Assembly: GCA_026936335.1 (NCBI GenBank)
Contig: JAPMXV010000029.1
Location: 62,001 to 126,000 of the forward strand
From: Mantamonas sphyraenae STR306
Lineage: Eukaryota > Protista > CRuMs
Length of the DNA stretch: 64,000 nt
Direction: 5' to 3'
Part shown: one piece after another, positions 11,362 to 41,500 of the stretch
Layout of the letters: each line of letters opens with the position of its first letter
How positions within the stretch are numbered: position 1 is the stretch's first letter
Program-made: the position numbers and the translations under genes
The notes under the pieces: model-generated
Seen by the model: the letters and a program-made list of their open reading frames with translations, nothing else
What the model was told of the DNA's origin: nothing
Database searches by the model: none

Positions 11362-14300
11362 ATGTCGATTCTGAAGTGTCAGCACCATAGCTGCAACAAC
11401 GAGACAGTGCTCATGGTGTGCTGGGTAACGTCAGCCGAACCTCACGTGTCGCTGGTGTGTCCGACCTGTGTGGCCGACAACGAGTCGATTTCCCTGTACA
11501 CACCACGAACAAAACTACCTGCAAATCTGGGCGAGCCCGAAGGTGACATGCAAGGGTACGCCAACGTCAACGGTGTCAACCCCGCGAAGGTGGCATGCTG
11601 GGTGTCGTCCTATACCACCGCCGTGCGCGCCTCTCCACCTCTGCGAACGTCCATGTGCAAGTACCTTATCGCATGGCTGGAGGCAACGGCAGGCGGGAAC
11701 GACCCGACCCAGTTGGGGCCTGAGCCTGGGGAGCAAGGTAAGCTCAAACCGCACTCAATCCCGCTGACAGGAGAGTGGAGATTGCTCACCCGCCCTCTTT
11801 GCGCCGGCACACACAGACCCCAGCGTCGTCAACACGGCCCTTCTGCGGCAGACCTGGTGCATGGCCATGTTCTGTGACGACGACATGTATGCCGTGGCCT
11901 GCAACGATCTCTTCCTTGCCGCTACAGTGCTGGCAGGCGGCGACGACCTGTGGGGTGACTCGGCAGATTTCCATCACCGCCTCGAGGTCGCATTCGACTC
12001 TGACTTCCCCATCCAGATGTTGCATGGTGGTACCCCCCCGCCAGCGGACGCCGCAGGGGTTGCAAAGCTCGCGATGCAAGAAGCACTCCAGCAGGAGCAG
12101 CAAGTGCCCTTCGGGGTGCTCTGTTTCCAAGGGGAGCACTACACGGCATGGCTTCCACTGGCGGAAGGGAAATTCCGTGTGTACAATGACCTTGCGCAGC
12201 AGCTGACTGACGAGGAGTGGCCCGCGCCTGAGCGTGCGCCCACGGGTTTCAAGCTGGTCTTTCTCAAGTCTCAACCGGAAGAGGATTGGACGTTGCCGTC
12301 TGCCATGGGCACCATGGATCTCGACAACAAATCAAGCGTGTTCCGCAAGCCCATGGCCATCAAGGGCCCGCGAGTTGTGATGCAGAGCAAGGAGAGCTCC
12401 ACCTCAGCTGCTGGAAGGCGTTTGTACGCGCACGCTGCACGGGCTCGAGGGACAACGCCAGCGCCTCAAGGACGGCCACCTTCGACCCGGGTGCAGGTTG
12501 CTGGGTCAACCGCATCTGTGCGTGGGCTCCGTTTCAACCGTGTGCCTGCAAAGCAGACATCAGCGGGCCAGTTTGCATCGCTGCCCACTGCCGGCAAGAC
12601 GCCCGTGACCGCCAAGTGTCTGGACGTGTTGAACGACAACTGGCAACCCCCACCTTTGGCTGACTCTGCTGTCAACGAGGGCGTGGAGGGTGGTGTGCAG
12701 TGTGGCGTCGGTGGGTCGGGGGGAAACTGCCTCGCCACAGTGCACGTTGGCCTCAGCAGCCTCGCCGCTCGCTACTTGCACCTCTCCGACCATACCATCA
12801 CGCATCCCGCCCCGTTTCCGAACATGCTGCCCGTCTCTGGCGTACAAAACCCGTACCAGCACCCACAACCACCCATCATCTGGGGCAATGTCAACACCCA
12901 TCCCCAGCAGCAGCACCACGCGGATGCTCATCAGGGCCACCCATACTACACCCACCCTCCTCCGCCTCCTCCTCAGCCGCGACAAACCGCCCAGGTGCAC
13001 TTTGCTCAGCCTCCGTCGCACCCTCCACCTGCTCAACGCACCACAAACCACAACCGCGTCCCGAAACGCATCAGCCCTGCCTTTGTCGGCATCACACGGA
13101 CCACATCCACCACCACATCGTCGTCCTCCTCCCACCAGGCCACACGGCAGACTGGAGACAGCGACGACGACGCAGAACAGGACACACACATACTTGACAA
13201 CGTTGACGTGGAGGACCTGATGTTCCTGAACTTTGGCCACATTGAGCCACTGTCCATCTCTAGCAACCCAGAGTGGATGACCACCTCATGGATGGAGGCG
13301 TACGAGGTAGACGGCGAGGCAACCCAGCAGCACGTGGACGACGAGGTGGAAACTGGGGGTTCATTCAGGTTTGCAGACACCGGTGATGCCATGGATGAGG
13401 AGTACATGCCGCAAGACGACAGCGACGACGACACAGACGACATGGAGCAGGAGGGCGCGGACGAGTGGCAGCCGAGACGCACGAGACGAGGCCGCGCACA
13501 ACGACGCAGAGGCCACATCAACCGTCGTACTGGCAGTGGCACCGAGACAGGAACGTCGAGCACACGGGCAAGGAGGGCCAAGAACGGAGACACCGGCGCA
13601 CGGAAGAAAACAGGCGTGAACAAGGAGAACAAGTTGCCAGATGGTGTTGTGCGCAAAGGGTGGACAGCGAGAATCAGTGACGAGCGCAGCCACAGCAACA
13701 AGAAGGAGCACACGGGACTGCTGAAGCACATGCGTACCTTGGCCAACGAACATCCCATCGACGACATCCCCGACCTCATGACCCTGCAGGCGCGTGTTGT
13801 GGTCTGCCATGGCACCCTGAACACGCTGGTCCGACAGATTCAGCTCGCTCTGGGCAACATTCCTCTCTCCAAGGGCGACATGGCCTTGTGCCTCACGCTC
13901 CTCGGCCGTGACGTGGATCAACATGCGTGCAGTGCTGCCATCCGTGACTCTGGTCTGGCCACGGGTGTGACAAAGGCTGGGTTGAAGGTGTGCTGGCTGG
14001 AGGAGCCACACGACTACGGCGACCCCAGCTACGCCCTCCTCCACCTGCTCATGACAGAGATGGACACTCTCGGCCACAGGCCCCATCCCACCACCTGGAA
14101 GGAGCACAAGCAGACCCGGCTGTCGCTGCAGGAAGCACGACGCCCTGCTGACAACGACAGCGACCCACACTGGACACAGTGCGACTACGACCACCACCTC
14201 ACCACCGCCGAGGTGGAAGAGTGGCATCCAGAGTCTGTGCGCAGTGGCTGGGCAAGGCACAATCCCAACGACGAGCGTGGCAGCTGCACGACGCGGGAGT

Positions 14301-17300
14301 TCCAGACGCTGCTGGCACACATGAAGGCACGCGCAGCCAAGCACCCTCGCCATCAGCACGCACACGAGCTCCGTGCACTTCGTGAGCTGATCAACAACGG
14401 CAGTGTGAACTCCCTGGTGCGACACATCGTCCTGGCGCTGGGCAACGTTGGCGTGCCGCCTGTCGACCTGGCCTTCTTTGTCCGCCTCCTCAGGCCACAC
14501 CTCACCTACCAGCAGGTGGTTGGTGCCATCAACCACACCCTCAGCCGCGGGGTCACCTCCCTCTCCCTCAAGATCGCCTGGCTCGACAACCCCAAACGCG
14601 ACGACGCCACACTGCACACCCTCGTCCACACCCTCATCGACCGCATCACACCCCACATCACCGCACGCCCCACCACTGTCGACGCCGTCAACGCCCTCGA
14701 CATCCCTGAACTTGTTCTGCCCGAAGCAACAGAGGAGGAGATGATGGCCGCTGAGGATGGACTGCCAGATGGCGTTGTGCGCAGTGGCTGGAAGAGGTGG
14801 CGCAGGAACGACCGCAGCCACAGCAACAAGAAGGAGCACACGGCACTGCTGAAGCACATGCACACTCTGGCCAACGAGCATCCTCTCGACAGTATCCCAG
14901 ACCTCATGAACCTGCAGGCGCGTGTTGTGGTCTGCCATGGCACCACGTTGACGCTGATCCGACAGATTCAGCTCGCTCTGGGCAACATTCCTCTCTCCAA
15001 GGGTGACATGGCCTTCTGTCTCACGCTTCTCGGCCGTGACATGGATCAAAATGCGTGCAGCATTGCCATCAACTACGCTGGTCTGGCCATGGGTGTGACA
15101 GAGGCTGGGTTGAAGGTGTGCTGGCTGGAGGAGCCACACGACCACGGCGACCCCAACTATGCCCTCCTCAACCTGCTCATGACAGAGATGGACACGCTTG
15201 GCGACAGGCCCCATCCCACCACCAGGGAGGAGCACAAGCAGACCCGGCTGTGGCTGCAGGAAGCACGACGCCCTGCTGACAACGACGGCGACCCACACTG
15301 GACACAATGCGACTATGACCACCACCTGAACACCACCGAGGTGGAAGAGTGGCATCCTGAGTCTGTGCGCAGTGGCTGGGCAGCGCAGAATTCCAGCGAC
15401 GAGCGTGGCAGCTGCACGGGGCGGGAGTTCCAGACGCTGCTGGCACACATGAAGGATCGCGCAGCTAAGCATCCTCGCCATCAGTACACACATGAGAACC
15501 AGGCACTGCGTGAGCTGATCATCCACGGCGACCTGGAGTCCCTGCTGCGACACATCATCCTGGCACTGGGCAACGTTGGCGTGCCGCCTGTCGACCTGGC
15601 CTTCTTTGTCCGCCTCCTCAGACCACACCTCACCTACCAGCAGGTGCAACAGGCCATCAACCACACCCTCACCCGCGGCGTCACCTCCCTCTCCCTCAAG
15701 ATCGCCTGGCTCGACAACCCCAAACCCAGCGACGCCACACTGCACACCCTCCTCCACACCCTCATCGACCACATCACACCCCACATCACCACCCGCCCAA
15801 CCACCACCGCACTCGTCAACGCCCTCGACATCCCCGAGCTTGTTCTGCCCGAGCCCACCGAGGAGGAGTTGATGGCCATGGAGGGACTGCCAGACGGTGT
15901 TGTGCGCAGTGGCTGGAAGAGGTGGCGCAGGCGCAGCCACAGCAACAAGAAGGAGCACACGGCACTGCTGAAGCACATGCACATTCTGGCCAACCAGCAT
16001 CCTACCGACGACACCCCAGACATCATGAACCTGTACGCCCGCGTTGTGATCTGCAATGCATCCATGTCCGGGCTGGTCCGACAGATTCAGCTTGCTCTGG
16101 GCAGCATTCCCCTCTCCCAGGGCGACATGGCCCTCTTCCTCACCCTTCTCGGCCGTGACATGGATCAACAGGCGTGCAGTGCTGCCATCATCGGCGCTGG
16201 TCTGGCCACGGGTGTGACAGAGGCTGGGTTGAAGGTGTGCTGGCTGGAGGAGCCACGCGACCACGGCGACCCCGACTATGCCCTCCTCCACCTGCTCATC
16301 ACAGAGATGCGCACTCTCGGCGACAGGGCCCATCCCACCACCTGGAAGGAGCACAAGCAGACCCGGCTGTGGCTGCAGGAAGCACGACGCCCTGCTGACA
16401 ACGACAGCGACCCACACTGGACACACTGCGACGATGTCTCGCCGCCCACCACCGACGTGCGCTTGCGACGCAATAGCAAGTCGGCACTTCTCAGAATTGC
16501 GCGCAAGATGGCGGAAACGAATACTCCCGTCCAACCCGAAGTCTGGCTGGTCGACTGTGGGTACTATACGTTCCTCACGCTCAGGCGTATGCATTGGGGT
16601 ACCCTTGCAGAGACCCCCAAAACGCGCGTGGAAAACGCCATGAAATCATTGCAGGCTGAGCTCGACCACAGGCTTGAGCCCTGCCCACGCGAGGCCATCT
16701 TCTTTACCGAACATCCCGGGACGGACGATGACCTGCTGCTGCTGTGCGGCGGCGCGGGATACAAGAGCCGATCTTGGTTCGTGGACCTCATGAGACGTAT
16801 GGCGAATGGCATTCGCAAGAATGGCCCTCGCGATCTCCTTAAACAAAGCAAGGCGATTCGGTACAGGCTTTGTGCCGCTGCCTTGGTCAATTCCGGGAGG
16901 AGTGTCATGGTGCCTGAGGACCAATCGCGTATGGCAGAGGCAGACACATTGCTGGTCGACTGGATCGCCACGGAGGTGTCCGACGATGTCGCCTGCTTGG
17001 GTGTCGTGGCTGAGGACAGCGACGATCTGACATGCGTGGCGAGTGCCGGCCTCTCGCGGCCGTTGGTTTATCGCAGCGCGAGAAACCCAGAGGAAAGCCT
17101 TTCGCTGACGACAGAGGACCAGCAACGGCTCCTCCATCTCTCGTTGCTGGCACTGACGGATGTGCCTCATCCGGATGACTGGAGTGAAGAGCAAGAGGTG
17201 CTACGTTTTATGCGGGCACATCTGTACGAAAGCAGCGCATTGGATGTCCAGCTCCCAGACACCGCCTACGTTGCCGAGAACCGCCGCAATCGTCACGCCT

Positions 17301-20300
17301 TCGACAACAACAAGAGTCGCAAGAGAGACCGTCCAGTCCCCTTGACCAAAAAGCGCGCCAAGCAGGAGGTGGACGCGGTGGAGATATTGGTTGAGGCCTA
17401 CAACCGGGCAAGCGACAAAAACATGCCTGGCTGCACTGAAGACGACTCTGGACGAGTACGAGGAGAATCATGCTGACCTGGACGTGTTGAAGAGATTTCT
17501 GAATCGGAAAAGCCAAGGATGGAATCAATCAGTCCCCGAGGGCGAGCTGGTAGGCTTGGAGGGGGTGACGTTGCTTCTGGGTGTACGAACTGCCCTGAAG
17601 ATTCTGGGCGGGGTCCGGCCAAAGAAGGTTGCGAACTTGGCAGCGACGATCTGCAATGAGGCCTTTGACCGTGGCGAGTATGGCCCTCTGGAACTGCATC
17701 CCTATTTTCTGATGAACAAGGTGTTGGAGCAAGAGAAGAGGAAGCGCAAGAACGAACAGGAGGAGGATGAGGAGGGAGGAGAGGTGGAGAAGAGGCAACG
17801 TGTGGAGGAGGTGTGTCCCCTTTCATCTTCCCAGAGCTACGGGTACATGGTCCCTCCCATGGCTGCCCAGCCGTTTCCGAACACGCTGCCCGTCTCTGGC
17901 GTACAAAACCCGTACCAGCACCCACAACCACCCATCATCTGGGCCCCTGTCAACACCCATCCCCAGCAACACCACGGATACGCTCATCAGGGCCACCCAT
18001 ACTACGCCTACCCTCCTCCGCCTCCTCCTCAGCCGCGACAAACCGCCCAGGTGCACTTTGCTCAGCCTCCGTCGCACCCTCCGCCTGCTCAACCCACCAC
18101 GAACCACAACCGCGTCCCCAAACGCATCAGCCCTGCGTTTGTCGGCATCACACGGACCACATCCACCACCACATCGTCGTCGTCTTCCCACCAGGACATC
18201 CGGCAGACTGGAGACAGCGACGACGACGACGCATACCAGGACACACACACACATGACACTGGTGACGTGGAGGACCTGATGTTCCTGAACTTTGGCCACC
18301 TTGAACCACTGTCCATCTCCAGCAACCCAGAGTGGATGAGCAGCTCATGGATGGAGGCGTACGAAGAAGACGGCGAGGCATACGACCCAATCTTGCTGCA
18401 CATGGACGACGAGATGGAAACTCAGGGCGCACTCAGCTTTGCAGACACTGGTGATGCCATGGATGAGGAGTACATGCCGCAAGACGACAGCGACGACGAC
18501 ACAGACGACATGGAGCAGGAGGGCGCGGACGAATGGCAGCCGAGAGGCAACGGTAGAGGGCACGCTCGCCGTCGTACTGGTCCACAGAAGATGAAAGGCA
18601 GCGGACAGCGCAGGCGCAGGGTCACGGCTGGCAGTGGCACAGAGACAGGAACGTCGAGCAAACGGGGAAGGAGGGCCAAGAACGGAGACACCGGCGCACG
18701 GAAGAAAGCAGGCATGAACAAGAAGATCAAGTTGCCAGATGGTGTTGTGCGCAGTGGCTGGACAATGGGACACAGTGACGAGCGCAGCCACAGCAACAAG
18801 AAGGAGCACACGGCACTGCTGAAGCACATGCACACCCTGGCCAATGAGCATCCCATCGACAACATCCCAGACCTCATGACACTGCAAGCGCGTGTTGTGG
18901 TCTGCCATGGCACTACGACCACGCTTGTCCGACAGATTCAGCTTGCTCTGGGCAACATTCCCCTCTCCCAGGGCGACATGGCCCTCTGCCTCACCCTTCT
19001 CGGCCGTGACATGGATCAACAGGCGTGCAGCGTTTCCATCATCAACGCTGGTCTGGCCACAGGTGTGACAGAGGCTGGGTTGAAGGTGTGCTGGCTGGAG
19101 GAGCCACACGACCACGGCGACCCCAACTATGCCCTCCTCAACCTGCTCATGACAGAGATGGACACTCTCGGCAACAGGCCCCATCCCAGCACCTGGAAGG
19201 AGCACGAGCAGACCCAGCTGTTGCTGCAGAAAGCACGACGCCCTGCTGACAACGACAGCGACCCACACTGGACACAGTGCGACTACGACCACCACCTCAC
19301 CACCGCCGAGGTGGAAGAGTGGCACCCTGAGTCTGTACGCAGTGGCTGGAGCAGGGGAACTCCCAGCGACGAGCGTGCCAGCTGCACGGCGCAGGAGTAC
19401 CAGTCGCTGCTGGCACACATGAAGGCACGCGAAGCCAATTATCCTCGCCATCAGCACGCACACGAGCTCCGTGCACTTCGTGAGCTGATCAACAACGGCG
19501 ACCTGAATTCCCTGCTGCGACACATCGTCCTGGCGCTGGGCAACGTTGGCGTGCCGCCTGTCGACCTGATCTTCTTTGTCCGCCTCATCAGGCCACGCCT
19601 CACCTGCAAACAGGTGCAAAAGGCCATCACCACCATCCTCACCCGCGGCGTCACCTCCCTCTCCCTCAGGATCGCCTGGCTCGACAACCCCCGACCCAGC
19701 GACGCCACACTGCACACCCTCCTCCACACCCTCATCGACCGCATCGCACCCCACATCACCACCCGCCCCACCACCACCGCACTCGTCAACACCCTCGACA
19801 TCACCGCGCTTGTTCTGCCCGAGCCAACGAAGGAGGAGGAAGTGGTGGCCGTTGAGGATGGACTGCCAGATGGCGTTGTGGGCAGTGGCTGGACCAACTG
19901 GCGCAAGAGCGAGCGCATGCACAGCAACAAGAAGGAGCACACGGCACTGCTGAACCATATGCACAGCCTGGCCAACGAGCATGCCATGGACGACATCCCA
20001 GACCTCATGACCCTGCAGGCGCGTGTTATGGTCTGCCATGGCACCCTGACCACGCTCGTCCGACAGATTCAGCTCGTTCTAGGCAACATTCCCCTCTCCC
20101 AGGGCGACATGGCCCTCTGTCTCACCCTTCTCGGCCGTGACGTGGATCAAAGCGCGTGCAGACTCGCCATCCAGAGCGCTGGTCTGGCCATGGGTGTGAC
20201 AAAGGCTGGGTTGAAGGTGTGCTGGCTGGAGGAGCCACACGACCACGGCGACCCCAACTACGCCCTCCTCCACCTGCTTGTGACAGAGATGGACACTTTC

Positions 20301-23300
20301 GGCAACAGGCCCCATCCCACCACCTGGAAGGAGCACAAGCAGACCCGGCTGCGGCTGCAGGAAGCACGACGCCCTGCTGACAACGACAGCGACCCACACT
20401 GGACACAATATGACTACGACCACCACCTTGCCACCGCCGAGGTGGAAGAGTGGCATCCTGAGTCAGTGCGCAGTGGCTGGAGCAAGACCGGAGACGAGCG
20501 TGGCAGCTGCACGGCGCGGGAGTTCCAGACGCTGCTGGCACACATGAAGGCACGCGCAGCCAATTATCCTCGCCATCAGCACACACACGAGCACCAGGCA
20601 CTGCGTGTGCTGATCAACAACGGCAGCAAGCTGTCTCTGGTGCGACACATCATCCTGGCGCTGGGCAACGTTGGCGTGCCGCCTGTCGACCTGGCCTTCT
20701 TTGTCCGCCTCCTCAGGCCACACCTCACCTACCAGCAAGTTCAACTTGCCATCAGCGCCACCCTCAGCCGCGGTGTCACCTCCCTCTCCCTCAAGATCGC
20801 CTGGCTCGACAACCCCCCACCCAGCGACGCCACACTGCACACCCTCCTCCACACCCTCATCGACCGCATCACACCCCACATCACCACCCGCCCCACCACC
20901 ACCGACGCCGTGAACACCCTCGACATCCCCAAGCTTGTTCTGCCCGAGCCCACAGAGGAGGAGACGATGGTCGTGGAGGGTGGACTGCCAGATGGCGTTG
21001 GGCGCAAGAGCGAGCGCAGCCACCAAGGCACACGGCAGACTGGAGACAGCGACGACGACGACGCAGACGAGGACACACAAACACATGACACTGGTGACGT
21101 GGAAGACCTGATGTTCCTGAACTTTGGTCACCGTGAACCACGGTCAATCTCCAGCGTCTCATCATGGATGGAGGCGTACGGAGAAGACGGTGTGGCAAAC
21201 GACACAACTCAGCAGCACGTGGACGACGTGTTGGACCTCCAGGACCCACTCAGCTTTGCAGACACTGGTGATGCCATGGATGAGGAGTACATGCCGCAAG
21301 ACGACAGCGACGACGACACAGACGACATGGAGCAGGAGGACACGGACGAATGGCAGCCGAGGCGCACAAGTAGAGGCCACACGCGACGACGCAGAGCCCA
21401 CAACAGCCGTCGCAAGGGTCCACACACGATGAAAGGCAGCGGACAGCGCAGGCGCAGGGTCACGGCTGGCAGTGGCACAGAGACAGGAACGTCCAGCACA
21501 CGGGCAAGAAGGGCCAAGAATGGAGACAACGGTGCACGGAAGAAAGCAGGCGTGGACAAGACGAATAAGTTGCCAGATGGTGTTGTGCGCAAAGGGTGGA
21601 CAACAGGACACAGTGACGAGCGCAGCTACAGCAACAAGAAGGAGCACACGGCACTGCTGAACCACATGCACACCCTGGCCAACGAGCATCCCATCGACGA
21701 CATCCCAGACCTCATGACCCTGCAAGCGCGTGTTATGGTCTGCCATGGCACCCTGACCACGCTTGTCCGACAGATTCGGCTCGCTCTGGGCAACGTGCCG
21801 CTCTCCCAGGGCGACATGGCCCTCTGCCTCACCCTTCTCGGTCGTGATGTCGATCAACAGACATGCAACAGTGCCATCCACGACGCTGGTCTGGCCATGG
21901 GTGTGACAAAGGCTGGGCTGAAGGTGTGCTGGCTGGAGGATCCACTCGACCACGGCAACCCCGACTACGCCCTCCTCCACCTGCTCATGACCGAGATGGA
22001 CACTCTCGGCAACAGGCCCCATCCCACCACCTGGAAGGAGCACGAGCAGACCCGGCTGTCGCTGCAGAAAGCACGACGCCCTGCTGACAACAACAGCGAC
22101 CCACACTGGACACAGTGCGACTACGACCACCACCTCACCACCGCCGAGGTGGAAGAGTGGCACCCTGAGTCTGTACGCAGTGGCTGGAGCAGGGGAACTC
22201 CCAGCGACGAGCGTGCCAGCTGCACGGCGCGGGAGTTCCAGACGTTGCTGGCACACATGAAGGCACGCGCAGCCAAGCACCCTCGCCATCAGCACACACA
22301 CGAGCTCCGTGCACTTCGTGAGCTGATCAACAACGGCGACCTGAATTCCCTGCTGCGACACATCGTCCTGGCGCTGGGCAACGTTGGCGTGCCGCCTGTC
22401 GATCTGGCCTTCTTTGTCCGCCTCATCAGGCCTCACCTCACCTACAAGAAGGTTCAAGTTGCCATCACCGCCACCCTCACCCGCGGCGTCACCTCCCTCT
22501 CCCTCAAGATCGCCTGGCTCGACAACCCCAAACCCAGCGACGCCACACTGCACACCCTCCTCCACACCCTCATCGACCGCATCACACCCCACATCACCAC
22601 CCGACCCACCACCACCGACGCCGTGAACACCCTCGACATCCCCGAGCTTGTTCTGCCCGAGCCAACGAAGGAGGAGGAAGTGGTGGCCGTTGAGGATGGA
22701 CTGGCAGATGGCGTTGTGCGCAGTGGCTGGACTCGCTGGCGTAGCGACGAGCGCAGCCACAGCAACAAGAAGGAGCACACTGCCCTGCTGAAGCACATGC
22801 ACACCCTGGCCAACGAGCATGCCATGGACGACATCCCAGACCTCATGACCCTGCAGGCGCGTGTTATGGTCTGCCATGGCACCCTGACCACGCTCGTCCG
22901 ACAGATTCAGCTCGTTCTAGGCAACATTCCCCTCTCCCAGGGTGACATGGCCCTCTGTCTCACCCTTCTCGGCCGCAACATGGATCAACATGCGTGCAGC
23001 AAAGTCATCATCAAGGCTGGTCTGGCCACAGGTGTGACCAAGGCTGGGTTGAAGGTGTGCTGGCTGGAGGAACCACACGACCACGGCGACCCCAACTACG
23101 CCCTCCTCCACCTGCTCATCACAGAGATGAGCACTCTCGGCGACAGGGCCCATCCCACCACCTGGAAGGAGCACGAGCAGACCCAGCTGTTGCTACAGGA
23201 AGCACGACGCCCTGCTGACAACGACAGTGACCCACACTGGACACAATGCGACTACGACCACCACCTTGCCACCGCCGAGGTGGAACAGTGGCATCCCGAG

Positions 23301-23864
23301 TCAGTGCGCAGTGGCTGGAGCAAGTCGCGGGGTGACGCGACCGACGAGCGTGGCAGCAGCACGGCAAGGGAGTTCCAGACGCTGCTTGCACACATGAAGG
23401 CACGCGCAGCCAAGCACCCTCGCCATCAGCACACACACGAGCACCAGGCACTGCGTGAGCTGATCAACAGCGGCAGTCTGCTGTCCCTTGTGCGACACAT
23501 CATCCTGGCGCTGGGCAACGTTGGCGTGCCGCCGGTCGACCTGGCCTTCTTTGTCCGCCTCCTCAGGCCACACCTCACCTACAAGCATGTGCAAGGTGCC
23601 ATCAAGGACACCCTCACCCGTGGTGTCACCTCCCTCTCCCTCAAGATCGCCTGGCTCGACAAACCCCAACCCAGCGACGCCACACTGCACACCCTCCTCC
23701 ACACCCTCATCGACCGCATCACACCCCACATCACCACCCGCCCCACCACCGTCGAACTCGTCAACGCCTACCCCATCCCCGCCTTCACCCTGCCCAAGCG
23801 CAAAGACCCTTCCTCCTCCTCCTCCTCCTCCTCCTCCTCCTCCAAACGCCAGCGCCTCGAATGA
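11362..23864 (+). CDS. Giant modular protein copy 1 (~4140 aa): Cys-pair N-terminus, USP-like protease, P/Q-rich, acidic and basic modules, 13 variable A/B repeats, FEN1/XPG-like nuclease, NLSs; intron 11738-11816, +1 frameshift at 17417-17421
   Basis: ORFs 11362-11877 and 11861-17476 join via a g|gtaagc...acacag| intron (gives GEQDPSVV). ORFs 11861-17476 and 17391-23864 join via an A5 tract that is A4 in the paralog (36161-36164). Colinear with the uninterrupted ORF 32568-42176. Confidence 0.85.
11548..12270 (+). other. Divergent, compact USP/UCH (C19-like) cysteine protease domain within giant gene 1
   Basis: Cys box-like GYANVNGVNPAKVACWVSS; QQD box-like GEQDPS (formed by splicing); His box-like GVLCFQGEHYTAWLPLAEGKFRVYNDL. 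Confidence 0.6.
13631..23790 (+). repeat. Coding tandem repeats: 7 A-type and 6 B-type units (AB period about 1128 nt / 376 aa) in three blocks
   Basis: A units (LPDGVVRSGW...) start near 13634, 14762, 15887, 18732, 19863, 21570, 22701. B units (WHPESVRSGW...) start near 14222, 15349, 19320, 20450, 22158, 23289. Confidence 0.97.
16500..17230 (+). other. FEN1/XPG-family (PIN-like) nuclease domain within giant gene 1
   Basis: Ordered motifs VWLVDCGYYTFL, AIFFTEHPG, MAEADTLL, GVVAEDSDDL, LSLLALTDV match the AID, VFDG, EAE/EAD, TEDxD and LLGxD motifs of FEN1/XPG. Confidence 0.7.
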
Positions 23865-28300: not shown

Positions 28301-29579
28301 TTTCAGCGGGTCAGGACGCTCGCTGTGCTGTGGCTCGGGCACAGCGCTGTCCGGAACGGGCGTCCCTCCTGCAGTCACATACAGAATGCCCCGTACTTCG
28401 TGCAAATACCCCTGCTTCGGGTTCTCCAGTGTGCGCGCACGGATGTAAAATGCCGTGTCCGTCTGAACAGTGGGAACGGTGAACTCAAGATCAAACCGCT
28501 CGGCGGTGTGCAGTGACACTGCTTGCACCCGCAAAGGGATGTGATCGGAGCCGTCTGCAGCCACCACATCAAACTCGGGCACTCCATCGATCGTTACAGT
28601 GAAGGCGAATACTGCGCCCATGTTGATCAATCGCAAGCGGATCTTCTCGCCAGATTGCGCGCGCACAATGGCCCTCTCCTTCCCGTTCATCAGGCCTCCG
28701 TGCCATGCGACGGTGGCGACACGCATGCCATCCACGTCTTTGGCCACGGAGCCTTCGAGGCCGCCCACATTCTGCCAGAAAAGGAGACTGGCAGGGTAGG
28801 GGAAGTAGTCCTGCAACGTCAGGATCCGTTCGCCTGCACCCCACGCAAAGGCGTCCCCGCCGATGACAGAGGCTGCAGAGGTGTTTGCAGGATGGATGAT
28901 TAGTGGGCCGTGCACCAGATTCTGCCCGGTGGTCTCCAGGCCGCTGTGGGTCTGTGTGGGGCAGACAAAGAAGAGTGTGGCGCATTCGAGAGTCAGCGGC
29001 GGCAGAGGAGGCGGTTTGGCTGGGGCGGAGGCGGAGGAGATGCCTCATGTCGGCGCCTGCCAACTCTGCCATGGGCGAGCTCGGCACAGGCCCGTGCTCC
29101 GCTGGGGCGGAGGAGTTGCCTGGGCCTCTTGCTGCCATGGGCGAGCTGCCTTTGGGGCGCGCGCATGCGCCAGATCCGGGACGTGCCGCAAGTCCGCTGC
29201 AGATGTCACTCACATGGTACCAGTATGTGCCGGGCCGTTCGTGCAGCGTGTTGAACTTGTAATTCATACAGTGCCCAGGTGGGATACCCCATTGCGTCAG
29301 GCCAACCACACCGTCGAAAAGCAGGTTCCCGCGCATCTCCAGGCCGTGCCAATGCAGACTGAGAATTTCCTCCAGGTTGTTGCGCACGGTGACCTCCAGC
29401 GTGTCGCCTTTGCGCACGTGGATCGCCGGTGCCGTCATCCTGTTGTTTATCCAGGCCACTCGCAGCTTCTCCCCGCCGATGTGGTGCAGTCCGTTGGTTA
29501 CGTTAAACTCGTAACGCACCAGAGCACCATGCGTCGACACCACACAGACCAAGCACAGCAACAGAGTCCACTTGATCAT
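25346..29579 (-). CDS. Multicopper oxidase (laccase-like) - TM - ABCG half-transporter fusion, about 1323 aa; intron 28952-29213
   Basis: Signal MIKWTLLLCLVCVVSTHG; copper ligands SLHWHG, WYH|THS (completed by a cat|gtgagt...cacag| splice), PHNIHLHG, FAHCHIDIHREDGM; TM WVFSVIVVGVLLVIVCGLCV-ARRR; Walker A GGCGCGKT, LSRGEQQ, VLLVDD; ABC2-type membrane domain. No stop between oxidase and transporter. Confidence 0.9.
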
Positions 29580-29637
29580 TACCTTGCCCCCCCCGGCGCG
29601 GAAGAAAACCAAGCGCAGCCGCACAACCAACCCATTC

Positions 29638-30266
29638 ATGAGCGACACAGACGCAAGCGACATCCACATGGTGTCAGACGGCATGGCGGTGAACATCGTA
29701 CGTCCACCCCCTTCCTCCCCCCCTCCCTCCATCCCTAACCCCCCCCCCCCCACCCCCCCACACAGACCGCCAAGCACAACCGCAAGCTCCTGGGCGCACT
29801 TGCAGCCACGGCAGCCGTCGTCCTGGTGTTTCTGATCCTAATCATGGCTCAAGTGGGCGTGCTTGAAGCACGTTTGAAGCCCGCACCCTGCGCACGCATC
29901 ACAGGCGCCCAATTGGCCGACGGCGAGCGGGGTGTGTCGACTCATGTTCTGGATGTTGCTGCCGGCCTACCGGGCAGCAACATCACCGTCACGCTGTACA
30001 AGAAGGGCAGCAACGGCGCCTACGCCGTCGTGGGCTCCGGCGCAACGGGCAGCGACGGACGCGCCGACCTCATGGCGGCCAGCCAGATGAGTGCCAACAC
30101 GACGTACAAGCTGCACTTTGCGCTCGAGGCGTACTTTGCAGCCACCGGCACCCCGGTCGTGTTTCCAGAGGCGGAGGTGGTGTTTCGCGTCGGCGGCGCC
30201 GTCGAGCATTATCACATGCCGCTGCTGCTGAGCCCCGGCGGCTACACGACGTACAGGGGGTCTTGA
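29638..30266 (+). CDS. URAH: 5-hydroxyisourate hydrolase (transthyretin-like) with N-terminal signal-anchor; intron 29698-29765
   Basis: STHVLD, DGR, HYHMPLLLSPGGYTTYRGS* signature. An atc|gtacgt...ccctaac...cacag| intron gives MSDTDASDIHMVSDGMAVNI-TAKHNRKLLGALAATAAVVLVFLILIMAQVGVL in frame. Confidence 0.93.
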
Positions 30267-32324: not shown

Positions 32325-32379
32325 ATGCACGGTGACAAAATACAGTACATTGTGGATGGTGGACACCGCGGAAGGGTGA

Positions 32380-32537
32380 CGAGGTGTTCTGGATGGGATG
32401 GAAGTGGTGGGGATGTGATGGTGATGAATAGGGAGGAGCGGGAGGCGCATGTGGAGGAGAGAGGGTGGGAAGGATGGATGACACTTCCGGATGAGGTACT
32501 GGAGAGGGTGATTAGGAGGGTGGAGAGAGGGGGGTGA
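32380..32537 (+). pseudogene. Relic of the F-box-like C-terminal tail, tail-to-tail with giant gene 2
   Basis: VMNREEREA..GWMTLPDEVLERVIRRVERGG* resembles VMNGEEREA..WMTLPDEVMERVIEWVGRG in the 5550-7044 product. Confidence 0.75.
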
Positions 32538-32567
32538 CTGGAAAGGGTGTGGGAATGTAGGGCTGGT

Positions 32568-35500
32568 TCATTCGAGGCGCTGGCGTTTGGAGGAGGAGGA
32601 GGAGGAGGAGGAGGAGGAGGAAGGGTTTTTGCGCTTGGGGAGGGTGAACGAGGGGATAGGGTAGGCGTTGACGAGTGCGATGGTGGTGGGTCGGGTGGTG
32701 ATGTGGGGTGTGATGCGGTCGATGAGGGTGTGGAGGAGGGTGTGCAGTGTGGCGTCGCTGGGTTTGGGGTTGTCGAGCCAGGCGATCTTGAGGGAGAGGG
32801 AGGTGACGCCGCGGGTGAGGGTAGTGCTGATGGCAGGTTGCACCTGCTGATAGGTGGTGTGTGGTCTGAGGAGGCGGACAAAGAAGGCCAGGTCGACAGG
32901 CGGCACGCCAACGTTGCCCAGCGCCAGGATGATGTGTCGCACCAGAGACAGCAGGTCGCCGTGGATGATCAACTCACGCAGTGCCTGGTGCTCGTGCGCG
33001 TACTGATGGCGAGGGTACTTGGCTGAGCGTGCCTTCATGTATGCCAGCAGCGTCTGGAACTCCCGCGCCGTGCAGCTGCCACGCTCGTCGCTTGTTCTCT
33101 GCACTGCCCAGCCACTGCGCACAGACTCGGGATGCCACTTGTCCACCTCGGTGATGGTGAGGTGGTGGTCATAGTCGCATTGAATCCAGTGCGGGTCGCT
33201 GTCGCTATCAGCAGGGCGTCGTGCTTTCTGCAGCCACAGCTGGGTCTGCTCGTGCTCCTTCCAGGTGGTGGGATGGGGTCTGTCGCCGAGAGTGTCCATC
33301 TCTGTCATGAGCAGGTGGAGGAGGGCGTAGTTGGGGTCGCCGTGGTCGTGTGGCTCCTCCAGCCAGCACACCTTCAACTCAGCCTTGGTCACACCCATGG
33401 CCAGGCCAGCGTGGAGGATGGCATGGCTGCACGCCGTTTGATCCATCTCACGGCCGTGAAGGGTGAGGCAGAGTGCCATGTCGCCCTGGGAGAGGGGAAT
33501 GTTGCCCAGAGCGAGCTGAATCTGTCGGACAAGCGTCAGCAGCGTGCCATGACAGACCACAACACGTGCCTGCAGGGTCATGAGGTCGGAGATGTCGTCG
33601 AGAGGATGCTCGTTGGCCAGGGTGTGCATGTGCTTCAGCAGTGCCGTGTGCTCCTCCTTGTTGCTGTGGCTGCGCCTGCGCCACCTCTTCCAGCCACAGC
33701 GCACAACGCCATCTGGCAGTCCATCCTCCACGGCCATCTTCTCCTCCTCTGTGGGCTCGGGCAGAACTAGCTTGGGGATGTCGAGGGTGTTGACGGCGTC
33801 AGTGGTGGTGGGGCGGGTGGTGATGTGGGGTGTGATGCGGTCGATGAGGGTGTGGAGGAGGGTGTGCAGTGTGGCGTCGTTGCGTTTGGGGTTGTCGAGC
33901 CAGGCGATCTTGAGGGAGAGGGAGGTGACACCGTGGCTGAGGGTGATGCCGATGGCACCTTGCACCTGCTGGTAGGTGAGGTTTGGCCTGAGGAGGCGGA
34001 CAAAGAAGGCCAGGTCGACAGGCGGCACGCCAACGTTGCCCAGCGCCAGGATGACGTGTCGCACAAGGGACTGCTGGTTTCCATTGTTGATCAGCTCACG
34101 CAGTGCATGGAGCTCGTGTGTGTGCTGATGGCGAGGGTGCTTGGCTGCACGTGTCTTCATGTGTGCCAGCAGCGTCTGGAACTCTCGCGCCGTGCAGCTG
34201 CCACGCTCGTCGCTGGGAGTACCCTTGGTCCAGCCACTGCGCACAGACTCTGGATGCCACTTGTCCACCTTGATGGTGGTATCGAGATGGTGGTCGTAGT
34301 CACATTGTGTCCAGTGTGGGTCGCTGTCGTTGTCAGCAGGGCGTCGTGCTTTCTGCAGCACCAGTTGGGTCTGCTCGTGCTCCTTCCAGGTGGTGGGGTG
34401 GGGCCTGTCGCCGAGAGTGTCCATCTCGCTCATGAGGAGGTGGAGGAGGGCGTAGTTGGGGTCGCCGTAGTCGTGTGGCTCCTCCAGCCAGCACACCTTC
34501 AACCCAGCCTTTGTCACACCCATGGCCAGACCAGCGGCGTGGATGGCACTGCTGCACGCCATTTGATCCATGCCACGGCCGAGAAGGGTGAGGCACAAGG
34601 CCATGTCGCCCTGGGAGAGAGGAATGTTGCCCAAAGCGAGCTGAATCTGTCGGACCAGCGTGCGCAGGGTGCCATGGCAGACCACAACACGCGCCTGCAG
34701 GGTCATGAGATCGGTGATGTCGTCGATGGGATGCTCATTGGCCAGGGTGTGCATGTGCTTCAGCAGTGCCGTGTGCTCCTTCTTGTTGCTGTGGCTGCGC
34801 TCGTCACTGGGCCCCATTGTCCAGCCACTGCGCACAACACCATCTGGCAACTTGATCTTCTTGTCCACGCCTGCTTTCTTCCGTGCGCCGGTGTCTCCGT
34901 TCATGGCACTCCTTGCCCGTGTGCTCGACGTTCCTGTCTCGGTGCCACTGCCAGCCGTGACCCTGCGCCTGCGCTGTCCGTTGCCTTTCATCTTCTGTGG
35001 ACCAGTACGACGGCGAGCGTGCCCTCTACCGTTGCCTCTCGGCTGCCACTCGTCCGCGCCCTCCTGCTCCATGTCGTCGCTGTCGTCGTCGCTGTCATCT
35101 TCCGGCATGTACTCCTCATCCATGGCATCACCAGCGTCTGCAAACCTGAATGAACCCCCAGTTTCCACCTCGTCGTCCACGGGCTGCTGGGGTGCGTCGT
35201 TTGCCTCGCCGTCTACCTCGTACGCCTCCATCCATGAGCTGCTCATCCACTCTGAGTTACTGGAGGGTGACCGTGGTTCAATGTGGCCAAAGTTCAGTAC
35301 CATCAGGTCCTCCACGTCACCAGTGTCATGTGTGTGCGTATCCTGGTCTGCGTCGTCGTCGTCGTCGCTGTCTCCAGTCTGCCGTGTGGCCTGGTGGGAG
35401 GAGGAGGACGATGTGGTGGTGGTGGATGTGGTCCGTGTGATGCCGACAAACGCAGGGCTGATGCGTTTGGGGACGCGGTTGTGGTTCGTGGTGGGTTGAG

Positions 35501-38500
35501 CAGGCGGAGGGTGCGACGGAGGCTGAGCGAAGCGCATCTGGGCGGTTTGTCGCGGCTGAGGAGGAGGCGGAGGAGGATAGGCGTAGTATGGGTGGCCCTG
35601 ATGAGCATAAGCGTGGTGTTGCTGCTGGGGATAGGTGTTGACAGGGACCCAGATGATGGGTGGTTGTGGGTGCTGGTACGGGTTTTGTACGCCAGAGACG
35701 GGCGGCATGTTCGGAAACGGCTGGGCAGCCATGGGAGGGACCATGTACGCATCGCTGTGGGAAGATGAAAGGGGACACACCTCCTCTTCCACACGTTGCC
35801 TCTTCTCCACCTCATCCTCCTCCTGTTCGTTCTTGCGCTTCCTCTTCTCTTGCTCCACCACCTTGTTCATCAGAAAGTACGGATGCAGCTCCAGAGGGCC
35901 ATACTCGCCACGGCCGAAGGCCTCATTGCAGATCGTCACTGCCAAGTTCGCAACCTTCTTTGCCCGGACCTCCCCCAGAATCCCCAGGGCAGTGTGTACA
36001 CCCAGAAGCAACGTCACCCCAGTCAAGTCTTGCAGCTCGCCCTCGGGGACTGATTGATTCCATCCTTGGCTGTTCTGATTCAGAAATGTCTTCAACCCGT
36101 CCAGGTCAGCATGATTCTTCTCGTACTCGTCCAGAGTCGTCTTCAGTGCAGCCAGGCATGTTTTGTCGCATGCCCGGTTGTAGGCCTTAACCAATTCCAC
36201 CACCGCGTTCACCTCCTGCTTGGCGCGCTCTCTGGTCAAGGGGACTGGACGGTCTCTCTTGTCACTGTTGTTGCCGAAAGCGTGACGATTGCGGTGGTTC
36301 TCAGCAACGTAGGCGGTGTCTGGGAGCTGGACATCCAATGCGCTGCTTTCGTACAGATGTGCCCGCATAAAACGTAGCACCTCTTGCTCTTCACTCCAGT
36401 CATCCGGATGAGGCACATCCGTCAGTGCCAGCAACGAGAGATGGAGGAGCCGTTGCTGGTCCTCTGTCGTCAGCGAAATGCTTTCCTCTGGGTTCTTCGC
36501 GCTGCGATAAACCAACGGCAGCGAGAGGCCGGCACTCGCCACGCATGTAAGATCGTCGCTGTCCTCCGCCACGACACCCAAGCACGCGTAATCGGACCCC
36601 TCCGTGGCGATCCAGTCGACCAGCAATGTGTCTGCCTCTGCCATACGCGATTGGTCCTCAGGCACCATGACACTCCTCCCAGAATTGACCAAGGCAGCAG
36701 CACAAAGCCTGTACCGAATCGCCTTGCTTTGTTGAAGGAGATCGCGCGTCCGGGACGCCGTTCTCAGCGTCTCGACGAACCACGTTCGGCTCTTGTATCC
36801 CGCGCCGCCGCACAGTAGCAGCAGGTCATCGTCCGTCCCGGGATGTTCGGTAAAGAAAATGGCCTCGCGTGGGCAGGGCTCAAGGCTGCGTTCGAGCTCA
36901 GCCTGCAATGATTTCATGGCGTTTTCCACGCGCGTTTCGCTGTCCTCTGCAAGGGTACCCCAATGCATACGCCTGAGCGTGAGGAACGTGTAGAGCCCGC
37001 AGTCGACCAGCCAGACTTCGGGTTGGACCGGAGTATTCGTTTCGGCCATCTTGCGCGCAATTTTGAGAAGTGCAGACTTGCTATTGCGTCGCAAGCGCAC
37101 GTCGGTGGTGGGCGGCGGGACATCGTCGCAGTGTGTCCAGTGTGGGTCGCTGTCGTTGTCAGCAGGGCGTCGTGCTTCCTGCAGCCACAGCTGGGTCTGC
37201 TTGTGCTCCTTCCAGGTGGTGGGATGGGGCCTGTTGCCAAGGGTGTCCATCTCTGCCATGAGCAGGTGGAGAAGGGCGTAGTTGGGGTCGCCGTGGTCGT
37301 GTGGCTCCTCCAGCCAGCCCACCTTCAACCTAGCCTTTGTCACACCCACGGCCAGACCAGCGCCGGTGATGGCATTGCTGCATGCACGTGGATCCATGTC
37401 ACGGCCGAGAAGCGTGAGAAAGAAGGCCATGTCGCCCTGGGAGAGGGGAATGTTGCCCAGAGCGAGCTGGATCTGTCGGACCAGCCCGGACATGGATGCA
37501 TTGCAGATCACAACACGGGCATACAGGTTCATGATGTCGCGGGTGACGTCGGTAGGACGCTGGTTGGCCAAAGTGTGCATGTGGTTCAGCAGTGTCGTGT
37601 GTTCCTTCTTGTTGCTGTGGCTGCGCCTGCGCCACCCCTTCCAGCCACTGCGCACAACGCCGTCTGGCAGTCCTTCCATGGCCATCAACTCCTCCTCTGT
37701 GGGCTCGGGCAGAACAAGCGCGGTGATGTCGAGGGCGTTGACGGCAGCGACAGTGGTGGGGCGGGTGGTGATGTGGGGTGTGATGCGGTCGATGAGGGTG
37801 TGGAGGAGGGTGTGCAGTGTGGCGTCGCTGGGTTGGAGGCTGTCGAGCCAGGCGATCTTGAGGGAGAGGGAGGTGACCCCGCGGGCGAGGGTGGCGCTGA
37901 TGGAAGAAATGACCTCGTTGTAAGTGAGGCGTGGCCTGATGAGGCGGACAAAGAAGGCCAGGTCGACAGGCGGCACGCCCACGTTGCCCAGTGCCAGGAT
38001 GATGTGTCGCACCAGGGACAGCAGGTCGCCGTGGATGATCAGCTCACGCAGTGCCTGGTTCTCATGTGTGTACTGATGGCGAGGATGCTTAGCTGCGCGA
38101 TCCTTCAGGTGTGCCAGCAGCGTCTGGAACTCCCGCACCGTGCAGCTGCCACGCTCGTCGCTGGAATTCTGCGCTGCCCAGCCACTGCGCACAGACGCAG
38201 GATGCCACTTTCCCCCCTCGGTGGTATCGAGATGGTGGTCGTAGTCACATTGTGTCCAGTGTGGGTCGCTGTCGTTGTCAGCAGGGCGGCGTGCTTCCTG
38301 CAGCCACAGTTGGGTCTGCTCGTGCTCCTCCCTGGTGGTGGGGTGGGTCCTGTCGCCGAGAGTGTCCATCTCTGTCATGAGGAGGTGGAGGAGGGCGTAG
38401 TTGGGGTCGCCGTGGTCGTGTGGCTCCTCCAGCCAGCACACCTTCAACCCAGCCTTGGTCACACCCATGGCCAGGCCAGCGTGGAGGATGGCATGGCTGC

Positions 38501-41500
38501 ACGCCTGTTGATCCATGTCACGGCCGAGAAGGGTGAGGCAGAGGGCCATGTCACCCTGGGAGAGGGGAATGTTGCCCAGAGCGAGCTGAATCTGTCGGAC
38601 AAGCGTCAACAGGGTGCCATGGCAGACCACAACCCGCGCCTGCAGGGTCATCAGGTCGGGGATGTCGTCGATGGGATGCTCGTTGGCCAGGACGTGCATG
38701 TGGTTCAGTAGTGCCGTGTGCTCCTTCTTGTTGCTGTGGCTGCGCTCATTGCTACGCCAGGTTGTCCAGCCACTGCGCACGACGCCATCTGGCAGTCCAC
38801 CCACCACTTCCATCTCCTCCTCCTCGGTGGGCTCGGGCAGAACTAGCTCGGGGATGTCGAGGGTGTTGACGGCGTCGATGGTGGTGGGGCGGGTATTGAT
38901 GTGGGGTATGATGCGGTCGATGAGGGTGTGGAGGAGGGTGTGCAGTGTGGCGTCGCTGGGTTGGAGGCTGTCGAGCCAGGCGATCTTGAGGGAGAGGGAA
39001 GTGACGCCGCGGGTGAGGGTGGTGTTGACGGCAGATTGCACCTGCTGATAGGTGAGTTGTGGCCTGAGGAGGCGGACAAAGAAGGCCAGGTCGACAGGCG
39101 GCACGCCAACGTTGCCCAGCGCCAGGATGATGTGTCGCACCAGGGACTTCAGGTCGCCGTGGATGATCAGCTCACGCAGTGCATGGTTCTCGTGTGCATG
39201 CTGATGGCGAGGGTGCTTGGCTGCGCGATCCTTCATGTGTGCCAGCAGCGTCTGGAACTCCCGCGTCGTACAGCTGCCTCGCTCGTCTGCGGTGTTGCTC
39301 CAGCCACTGCGCACAGACACAGGATGCCACTTGTCCACCTTGGTGGTGGTGGCAAGGTGGTGGTCGTAGTCGCATTGCGTCCAATGGGGGTCGCTGTCGT
39401 TGTCAGCAGGGCGTCGTGCTTTCTGCAGCCACAGCTGGGTCTCCTCGTGCTCCTTCCAGGTGGTGGGATGGGGCCTGTCGCCGAGCATGTCCATCTCTGT
39501 CATGAGCAGGTGGAGGAGGGCGTAGTTGGGGTCGCCGTGGTCGTGTGGCTCCTCCAGCCAGCACACCTTCAACCCAGCCTTTGTCACACCCATGGCCAGA
39601 CCAGCGTGGGGGATGGCATTGCTGCATGCGTATTGATCCACGTCACGGCCGAGAAGGGTGAGGCAGAAGGCCATGTCGCCCTGGGAGAGGTGAATGTTGC
39701 CCAGAGCGAGCTGAATCTGTCGGACAAGCGTCAACAGAGTGCCATGGCAGACCACAACACGCGCCTGCAGGGTCATGAGGTCGGGGATGTCGTCGATGGG
39801 ATGCTCGTTGGCCAGGGCGTGCATGTGGTTCAGCAGTGCCGTGTGCTCCTTCTTGTTGCTGCGGCTGCGCTCGTCACTGTGTCCCATTGTCCAGCCACTG
39901 CGCACGACGCCACCTGGCACTCCATCCTCCACGGCCAACTTCTCCTCCTTCGTTGGCTCGGGCAGAACTAGCTCGGGGATGTCGAGGGTGTTCACGGCGT
40001 CGAAGGTGGTGGGGCGGGTGGTGATGTGGGGTGTGATGCGGTCGATGAGGGTGTGGAGGAGGGTGTGCAGTGTGGCGTCGCTGGGTTTGGGGTTGTCGAG
40101 CCAGGCGATCTTGAGGGAGAGGGAGGTGACGCCGCGGGTGAGGGTGTCCTTGATGGCAGTTTGCACCTGTTTGCAGGTGAGGTGTGGCCTGAGGAGGCGG
40201 ACAAAGAAGACCAGGTCGACAGGCGGCACGCCAACGTTGCCCAGTGCCAGGGTGATGTGTCGCACCAGGGACTTCAGGCTGCCGTTGTTGATCAGCTCAC
40301 GGAGTGCATCGTGCTCGTGTGTGTGCTGATGGCGTGGGTACTTGGCTGCACGTGTCTTCATGTGTGCCAGCAGTGTCTGGAATTCACGCGCCGTGCAGCT
40401 GGCACGCTCGTCGCTGGGACCTTTGGTCCAGCCACTGCACGCTGACTCAGGATGCCACTTGTCCACCTTGGTGGTGGTGGCAAGGTGGTGGTCGTAGTCG
40501 CATTGTGTCCAGTGTGGGTCGCCGTCGTTGTCAGCAGGGCGTCGTGCTTCCTGCAGCAACAGCTGGGTCTGCTTGTGCTCCTCCCTGGTGGTGGGATGGG
40601 GCCTGTCGCCGAGAGTGTCCATCTCTGTCATGAGCAGGTGGAGGAGGGCGTAGTTGGGGTCGCCGTGGTCGTGTGGCTCCTCCAGCCAACACACCTTCAA
40701 CCCAGCGTTTGTCACTCCCATGGCCAGACCAGCGCATCGGATGGCATTGCTGCACGCATGTTGATCCATATCGCGGCCGAGAACGGTGAGGCAGAAGGCC
40801 ATCTCACCCTTGGAGAGGGGAATGTTGCCCAGAGCGAGCTGAATCTGTCGGACCAGCGTCAACAGGGTGCCATGGCAGACCACAACACGCGCCTGCAGGG
40901 TCATGAGGTCGGGGATGTCGTCGATGGGATGCTCGTTGGCCAGAGTGTGCATGTGCTTCAGCAGCAGAGCCGTGTGCTCCTGGTTGTTGCTGCGGGTGCG
41001 CTCATCCCTGCGTCCCGCTCTCCACCCTTTGCGCACAACACCATCTGGCAACTTGTTCTTCTTGTCATCGCCTGCGTTCTTCCGTGCGCCGTTGTCTCCG
41101 TTCATGGCCATCCTAGCCAGTGTGCTCGACGTTCCTGTCTCTGTGCCACTGCCAGCCGTGACCCTGCCCCTGCGCTGTCCGCTGCCTTTTTGTGAACCAG
41201 TACGATGGCTGGTGTGGCCTCCACTTGTGCGACTCGGCTGCCACTCGTCCGCGCCCTCCTGCTCCATGTCGTCTGTGTCGTCGTCGCTGTCGTCTTGCGG
41301 CAAGTACTCCTCATCCATGGCATCACCAGTGTCTGCAAACCTGAATGAACCCCCCGTTTCCACCTCGTCGTCCACGTGCTGCTGGGTTGCGTCTTCTGCC
41401 CCACCGTCTTCTTCGTACGCCTCCATCCATGAGCTGCTCATCCACTCTGGGTTGCTGGAGATTGACAGTGGCTCAAGGTGGCCAAAGTTCAGTACCATCA

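Follow-up and report, generated by a model that had tools for sequence, protein, structure and literature searches.

A subtelomeric gene family of hypervariable, putative winged-helix readers in Mantamonas sphyraenae, joined in three genes to a predicted FEN1/XPG-like domain

What do long arrays of nearly identical protein modules recognize when their differences are concentrated in a few patches? The question is raised by a 64,000-nucleotide stretch (the window) of the genome of Mantamonas sphyraenae STR306, a deep-branching protist from the sea. The stretch carries two giant convergent genes, G1 on the plus strand and G2 on the minus strand. An earlier note on this DNA had described 13 A and 11 B repeats, and all 24 were recovered where it had placed them, in three long frames (11768-17476 and 17346-23864 on the plus strand, 32568-42242 on the minus strand). 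The two genes and their surroundings are composed as follows.

10360-12816, plus strand: 5' portion of a multi-copy element, in-frame fusion with G1 (94-96% identity)
11861-23864, plus strand: gene G1, ~4,000 codons, in two frames in the assembly
12811-13648, plus strand: leader cassette, Pro/Gln-rich, acidic and basic, common to telomeric genes
13649-16432, plus strand: G1 modules A B A B A'
16442-17302, plus strand: G1 PIN/FEN1-like domain, 7/7 acidic residues, from sequence motifs
17300-17760, plus strand: G1 domain D, directly after the PIN-like domain
18747-23800, plus strand: G1 modules ABAB, acidic cassette, ABAB
19605-19637, plus strand: helix 3 of the modelled B module, the putative recognition helix with patch iii
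23865-24705, plus strand: G1 3' flank, common to 8 chromosome-end loci at 75-85% identity
32568-42176, minus strand: gene G2, single open frame, 3,202 codons
32640-34835, minus strand: G2 C-terminal modules ABAB
35850-36270, minus strand: G2 domain D, after the PIN-like domain
36273-37115, minus strand: G2 PIN/FEN1-like domain, from sequence motifs
37004, 36848, 36794/36788 and 36638/36632, minus strand: G2 PIN-like motif residues D38, E90, K108/R110 and E160/D162
36563/36557 and 36419, minus strand: G2 PIN-like motif residues D185/D187 and D233
37130-41036, minus strand: G2 modules A B A B A B A'
42497-42960, minus strand: decayed 3' end of another copy of the family, upstream of G2

In both genes the nuclease-like domain and the helical domain D, neither of them mentioned in the earlier note, interrupt the A/B arrays. 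G1 reads [element-derived N-terminus]-leader-ABABA'-PIN-D-leader-ABAB-acidic cassette-ABAB-Ser run-KRQRLE, and G2 reads leader-ABABABA'-PIN-D-leader-ABAB-Ser run-KRQRLE, probably from a start of the family type at 41936. Domain D has three copies in the genome, found only behind the PIN-like domain. The frame of G1 breaks near 17417, probably through an assembly error, since one base at that position is missing, at full listed depth, from two public-run contig sets. The decayed copy upstream of G2 accounts for a 181-nt direct repeat shared with 32441-32621 and is similar to the tandem junctions found at chromosome ends.

Up to 12816, the element at the 5' end of G1 matches four other loci at 94-96% identity; beyond that point the similarity is gone. 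The element has at least 10 copies and a ~2,000-amino-acid ORF, is joined to G1 at a short microhomology, and is the source of the USP-like His-box region of G1. Its identity as a Fanzor was not confirmed, as TnpB/Fanzor zinc-ribbon matches numbered 39 in the genome and zero in its ORFs. A relation between its PIN-like region and the PIN-like domain was sought and none was found. An Rfam search gave zero matches.

The modules, of which one gene holds up to 13, are 180 to 196 residues long and alternate between A and B. The two types are homologous, as the earlier note had proposed (hhalign probability 99.2%, E = 1e-19, 35% identity over 127 columns), and every variant it had quoted for three variable patches (i to iii) is present in the modules. 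In A, patch iii occupies alignment columns 94, 98, 101 and 102, the i, i+4, i+7, i+8 spacing given in the note; the same helix positions vary in B, together with column 98. The description of the framework as almost invariant did not stand: DNA identity between modules is 91-93%, with a pN/pS of 0.4-0.6. Recombination among modules is extreme.

A structure model of a B module, built on an alignment of 50 module rows, was confident (pLDDT 88.7, pTM 0.84) and predicts a winged helix, with three helices (57-67, 75-85 and 91-101) followed by a hairpin of two strands (103-106 and 111-115), all at pLDDT >90. Nearly all of the top 50 VIA matches were winged helices covering residues 54-119, many at an rmsd of 2-3 Å, and an Atlas search agreed. 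A three-helix core with a beta wing is also the plan of Fur, BlaI, MarR and forkhead winged helices. The modules thus in all likelihood adopt the winged-helix-like fold that had been suggested from the sequence. In the model, patch ii marks the start of helix 1 and patch iii the exposed face of helix 3, where K92, Q95, K96, T99 and T100 vary and V94, A97 and I98 are conserved, in line with the proposal of a single variable face on a recognition helix.

Diversifying selection on these sites, also proposed earlier, was supported by site-wise codon models and by a tree-free test, despite the heavy recombination. The codon models, which were our own mixture models rather than codeml, gave 2dL values of 88 and 86 for the window A and B modules and 312 and 303 for the telomeric ones, peaking at sites 8, 60, 94, 98, 101 and 102 in A and 7, 60, 98, 99 and 103 in B. 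The signal stayed positive (22-150) when synonymous rates were allowed to vary by site. In the tree-free test, heterozygosity at codon positions 1 and 2 of patch iii was 0.53/0.46, compared with 0.11/0.12 for four-fold sites (P of about 1e-4 or lower). At the most variable codons, positions 1 and 2 show three or four bases while the third is mostly constant, as had been noticed; column 102 is NNC in 12 of 13 window A modules.

The family comprises well over 100 copies, mostly subtelomeric, and more than 140 natural variants were sampled. At all 20 left chromosome ends examined, the first gene inside the telomere is a family copy facing inward, a placement absent from the earlier note, and tandem and truncated copies also occur. 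Most copies are ABAB genes whose leader is acidic and Pro/Gln-rich and whose tails are basic; the G1 leader cassette is 83% identical in DNA to theirs. G1 and G2 carry subtelomeric flanks, one of them sitting in a mobile element and the other in a purine-catabolism cluster.

Subtelomeric hypervariable families are often interaction genes, and it is conceivable, if unlikely, that the variable surface is a protein-protein interface by which the modules recognize or escape proteins of viruses, parasites or transposons, with the winged helix a mere scaffold. The subtelomeric, hypervariable character of this family would fit, as would the Gly/Pro or hydrophobic residues that make up 26-29% of the variable sites, the neutral core of A, and the use of winged helices in protein binding (a cullin WHB is among the VIA matches). 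Against such an interface, helix positions 2, 6, 9 and 10 are polar or charged in 71-74% of cases, no signal peptide or membrane segment was seen, and the fusion to a nuclease-like domain suits nucleic-acid targets.

That domain, of ~280 residues, is present in three genes only in the genome (G1, G2 and the C69 copy), all of them internal rather than subtelomeric genes. Seven acidic residues (D38, E90, E160, D162, D185, D187 and D233) and a YKxR motif are invariant across the copies at 45% identity, and dN/dS is 0.47 for G1 against G2 and ~0.25 in comparison with the C69 copy. In FEN-like PIN domains, acidic residues follow S1, S2 and S4 and precede H5, with two before H4 and one from the H2TH (PMC5499597). 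The acidic residues here follow the FEN order and spacing: the pattern was found in 73 of 84 FENs, in 3 of 3 copies and in at most 1 of 5,000 shuffles, an optimistic shuffle rate, since the pattern was set with our own sequences known and widened after it had first matched 2 of 84 FENs. The S2 residue is Glu, in a Thr-Glu pair, one position off the canonical Asp. The YKxR, a candidate helical-arch motif, lies 18-20 residues past E90; the structure model of the domain was poor (pLDDT 40). A helix followed by TD at 232-233 aligns with the FEN GxDY; the Gly-rich loop that follows there is absent, and beyond the Asp no H2TH is recognizable. In hhalign, the domain beat 100 shuffles against four host FENs and did not beat 60 shuffles against an 84-sequence profile. 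Atlas leads (0.82-0.86) were Pox G5, XPG_N, Asteroid and NYN. On the strength of the motifs and the language-model neighbours, a PIN/FEN fold is likely. The domain shares with FEN1, XPG, Asteroid and Pox G5 (PMC5499597) the acidic order and spacing, the putative arch Lys/Arg motif and the predicted strand-helix order, but differs in its S2 and H2TH regions, in having no significant profile match and in being fused to arrays.

MARF1/Limkain-b1, which combines an NYN/PIN endoribonuclease with eight winged-helix LOTUS domains and limits retrotransposons, likewise unites a PIN-superfamily nuclease and tandem winged helices in one protein (PMC6294520, PMC2848206). By analogy, RNA or RNA-protein particles might be what the modules bind, with the PIN domain degrading transposon or viral transcripts; Foldseek ranked Roquin ROQ first and Oskar LOTUS 42nd for the module, and the C69 domain maps to NYN clusters. 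We consider this reading, too, improbable. No OST-HTH/LOTUS or ROQ Pfam match was found in 50 modules, variation is maximal on helix 3, which classically reads the major groove, the tails are basic and NLS-like, and the seven-acid site with its YKxR motif is FEN-like, unlike the four-acid NYN type. The family also differs from MARF1 in having no RRM, in placing the nuclease between arrays, and in its hypervariable modules and many genes.

The chromosome-end positions, inward orientation and tandem and truncated copies, together with the insertions of the window genes, could instead mark a selfish or telomere-maintenance element that moves between ends, with nuclease copies autonomous, ABAB copies non-autonomous and variable helices following changing targets. 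This seems slightly less likely still: the genes lack a transposase and any reverse transcriptase, Gag or helicase Pfam match, no poly(A) tail or target-site duplication was seen at gene ends, telomeres are canonical TTAGGG, and ordinary subtelomeric exchange accounts for the distribution. Least probable, and already largely refuted, is that selection is mimicked by gene conversion, by local hypermutation or by a diversity-generating retroelement (DGR), for which the extreme recombination, somewhat raised local pS in the patches and third positions fixed as C or T, as in DGR codons, would speak, but third positions of the most variable codons are mostly constant beside the variable first two, intervening buried codons are quiet, adenine is not enriched at the most variable positions (15/72 at B99 position 2) and neither an invariant template nor a reverse transcriptase was seen in the window.

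Searches with the AB unit against 1.84 billion representatives, with the module alignment and with the nuclease-like domain found no homologues outside this genome, and searches of Pfam, PHROGs, NCBIfam and PDB sequences yielded no usable match. The family fits the definition of no known family. KRAB-ZNF and PRDM9 are tandem readers with a constant frame, helix-face variation, recombination shuffling, lineage-specific expansion and an attached effector. The present family is similar in all of these respects, but its putative readers are alternating A/B modules of unrelated fold, far from 28-residue C2H2 repeats, and it is subtelomeric with a nuclease-like effector. A PRDM9- or zinc-finger-like combinatorial specificity is plausible. 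TALE and STAR proteins (PMC11417379) share near-identical repeats with focal variable residues, but theirs are solenoid repeats of 34 (33-35) residues with a two-residue RVD, one per base, as opposed to large domains that carry three patches; winged-helix repeats are not mentioned in the survey cited. A code of one residue per base, as in TALEs, is unlikely, given the module size and the many Gly, Pro, Leu and Ala residues at variable sites.

We tentatively favor a lineage-specific family of modular readers of nucleic acids, shaped by an arms race, in which a few members also carry a predicted 5' nuclease. In each module, two helices would precede the winged-helix core and one would close it; selection would have diversified helix 3, the N-terminal loop and the opening turn of helix 1, with recombination reshuffling them across copies. 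From the fold, the helix positions and the NLS-like tails, we lean toward DNA as the ligand. The ABAB copies may be binders or regulators. In the three internal genes, two of them in the window, the array would select a site for the added FEN1/XPG-like domain to cut or trim. Such a protein-guided nuclease, if catalytically active, may serve in defence, its likeliest opponents being the mobile elements of which the genome is full. A natural eukaryotic protein-programmed nuclease, in which swappable winged-helix modules steer a FEN-like enzyme and the 100-plus telomeric copies form a reservoir of specificities, is a further-reaching and less probable reading.

To our knowledge, only a few natural scaffolds serve swappable nucleic-acid reading, namely zinc fingers, TALEs, PPR and PUF. 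If borne out, the modules would join zinc fingers and TALEs as a new scaffold for such reading, their variants would supply a built-in training set for a specificity map, and the nuclease fusion would be nature's parallel to engineered ZFNs and TALENs. The working logic, if confirmed, would resemble that of KRAB-ZNF and PRDM9 in an unrelated fold, and the family would allow a test of whether arms races of the zinc-finger kind against mobile DNA have had a separate origin in a deep-branching eukaryote.

Thirteen A and 11 B modules were found in the window, spread over three long frames, in agreement with the 24 repeats counted in the earlier note. As it had claimed, A and B are homologous to each other (probability 99.2%); spacing is ~196 residues from A to B and ~180 residues from B to A. 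For the analysis of variation, 74 modules of type A and 72 of type B were taken from the window and from chromosome ends of the assembly (78 contigs, 25,061,354 bases; the window lies on the longest, of 751,365 bases). Entropy was maximal at alignment columns 8, 60, 94, 98, 101, and 102 in the 74 A modules and at columns 7-13, 60, 98, 99, and 103 in the 72 B modules. Patch iii, one of three variable spots, had 57 distinct signatures among the 74 A modules and 64 among the 72 B modules. The framework, described previously as almost invariant, is conserved yet does vary, with DNA identity of 91-93%. A distinct subtype, A', was found among the 74 A modules only beside the nuclease-like domain of the two giant genes, G1 and G2, and may pack against it:
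15902-16327, + strand, A' module adjoining the nuclease-like domain of G1
37230-37655, - strand, A' module adjoining the nuclease-like domain of G2

The modules are under diversifying selection. Pairwise pN in patch iii was 3-4.9 times the framework pS, and framework pN/pS was 0.4-0.6. Our codon mixture models preferred omega >1 in the window sets (2dL of 88 and 86) and in telomeric sets outside the material of the earlier note (2dL of 312 and 303), and did so still when the synonymous rate varied by site (2dL of 22-150). Since recombination is heavy, with linkage decaying inside ~30 bases, tree-based values may be inflated. In a tree-free test, heterozygosity was 0.53 and 0.46 at codon positions 1-2 of patch iii versus 0.11 and 0.12 at four-fold sites. 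The two approaches agree on the diversifying selection proposed earlier, for which site-wise dN/dS after recombination testing had been suggested.

A structure model reached a pLDDT of 88.7 on an alignment of 50 rows, in which A and B modules were joined by divergent modules of contig C69. Nearly all top hits to residues 54-119 of the model were winged helices, with Z at or below 6.2 throughout, and the model supports the winged-helix-like fold suggested before. In the model, patch i is an N-terminal loop, patch ii the first turn of helix 1, and patch iii helix 3, in which positions 2, 5/6, 9, and 10 vary and hydrophobic positions 4, 7, and 8 are conserved. In HTH proteins, helix-3 positions of this kind are exposed and face DNA. 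Patch iii would occupy one face of a recognition helix, as anticipated.

In both G1 and G2, the module arrays are separated by the nuclease-like domain, 280 residues long, and by a domain D. Genome-wide, the pair occurs in only three places, the third being a C69 frame:
C69, ~264170-270670, - strand, frame of 2,165 codons holding some eight degenerate modules, the same nuclease-like domain, and domain D

The modules of this frame, a single diverged paralogue and candidate ancestral form of the family, are far more diverged than those of the window genes, and its end carries three KRQRVEE repeats. At 45% identity, all three copies retain D38, E90, YKxR, E160, D162, D185, D187, and D233, and FEN-like active sites have acidic residues in the same order and spacing (PMC5499597). 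The host FEN family aligned colinearly with the 280-residue domain over 223 columns, key residues in register and E90 off by one. Language-model neighbors of two copies (Pox G5, XPG_N, Asteroid, and NYN; lead-level scores) all belong to the PIN superfamily. Purifying selection acts on the domain (dN/dS of 0.47 between G1 and G2, P 0.008). Counting against a PIN/FEN assignment, a deeper FEN1 profile gave no significant match and a structure model of the domain failed. On these sequence comparisons the assignment is likely, and the predicted nuclease activity is favored less firmly.

By comparison with G2, the frame break of G1 is one extra A near 17417. This base was absent from two contig sets of public runs, at full listed depth, so G1 is probably a single frame of ~4,000 codons; there is a slight chance that those contigs derive from G2 instead. 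Run X1 contained 95% of the words of the G2 nuclease region and nothing of the G1 nuclease region, although the shared module was covered very deeply. By elimination against the four runs of the genome paper (PMC10492846), X1, which is labeled "DNA?", is probably RNA, in which case the module family and the G2 nuclease region would be transcribed.

The AB unit had at least 109 genome matches, nearly all inward-facing and 1.7-2.9 kb from contig ends. At 20 of 20 left ends examined, telomere repeats precede a gene composed of a leader, ABAB, and a Ser-KRQRLE tail. The consulted passages of the genome paper (PMC10492846) do not mention subtelomeric genes. Despite an internal location, 73-104 kb away from the end, G1 and G2 have subtelomeric flanks. 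Upstream of G2 is the decayed 3' end of another family copy, and G2 is located among purine-catabolism genes:
29826-30266, HIU hydrolase-like gene flanking G2
44339-45079, 2OG-oxygenase-like gene flanking G2
47850-51795, xanthine dehydrogenase gene flanking G2

Family remnants (leader and 3' flank) and an LRR gene of 84-base period are found at 3175-3521 and 5550-6923. The LRR gene resembles those adjoining the module family at chromosome ends, and the whole region looks like an internalized subtelomere. The window also holds a 116-base tandem array (45448-46291; copies 93-98% identical) and a multicopper oxidase and ABCG-type half transporter in one frame (25346-28915, - strand).

At position 12816, the 5' end of G1 is joined, in frame, with the front part of a multi-copy element:
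10360-12816, also at loci L131-L134, element family of at least 10 ORFs of ~2,000 amino acids

These ORFs have a PIN-like acidic pattern as well as a USP-like His box, and their frames gave no match to the TnpB zinc ribbon. The B-module end, in reverse complement, shares 85-87% identity with a 56-base stretch of the element (12667-12722), which may reflect chance, capture, or a target site. Directly upstream of the element fragment lies an IS630/Tc1-type DDE transposase (DDE_3, E 4e-27; 9165-10046, + strand). Positions 25009-25165, a predicted Fanzor-type remnant, match sites bearing TnpB zinc-ribbon matches on contigs C43 and C49 at 95-97%. The genome contains 39 TnpB/Fanzor-type matches.

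The module family falls outside the zinc-finger, TALE, LOTUS, and DGR families. No relatives outside this genome were found in the protein and contig collections searched, and our literature search found no paper describing the module family. As far as look-ups showed, the nuclease-like fusion and its three-gene distribution are new. Rival explanations are RNA targeting in the manner of MARF1, protein recognition by the modules, and a self-spreading telomeric element. A further rival is a mutational artefact; a hotspot is argued against by the most variable codons, whose third positions are mostly constant, as noted earlier (NNC at A102 in 12 of 13 A modules).

We conclude that the module family is real, under selection, of predicted winged-helix fold, and probably nuclease-fused. 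As a proposal for its function, helix 3 of each module most likely docks on nucleic acid, and arrays of modules would supply combinatorial specificity. Patches would be shuffled through subtelomeric recombination and new variants kept by selection from a moving target, with a few genes joining arrays to a 5' nuclease. TnpB/Fanzor-type elements, being many in the genome, are a plausible opponent.
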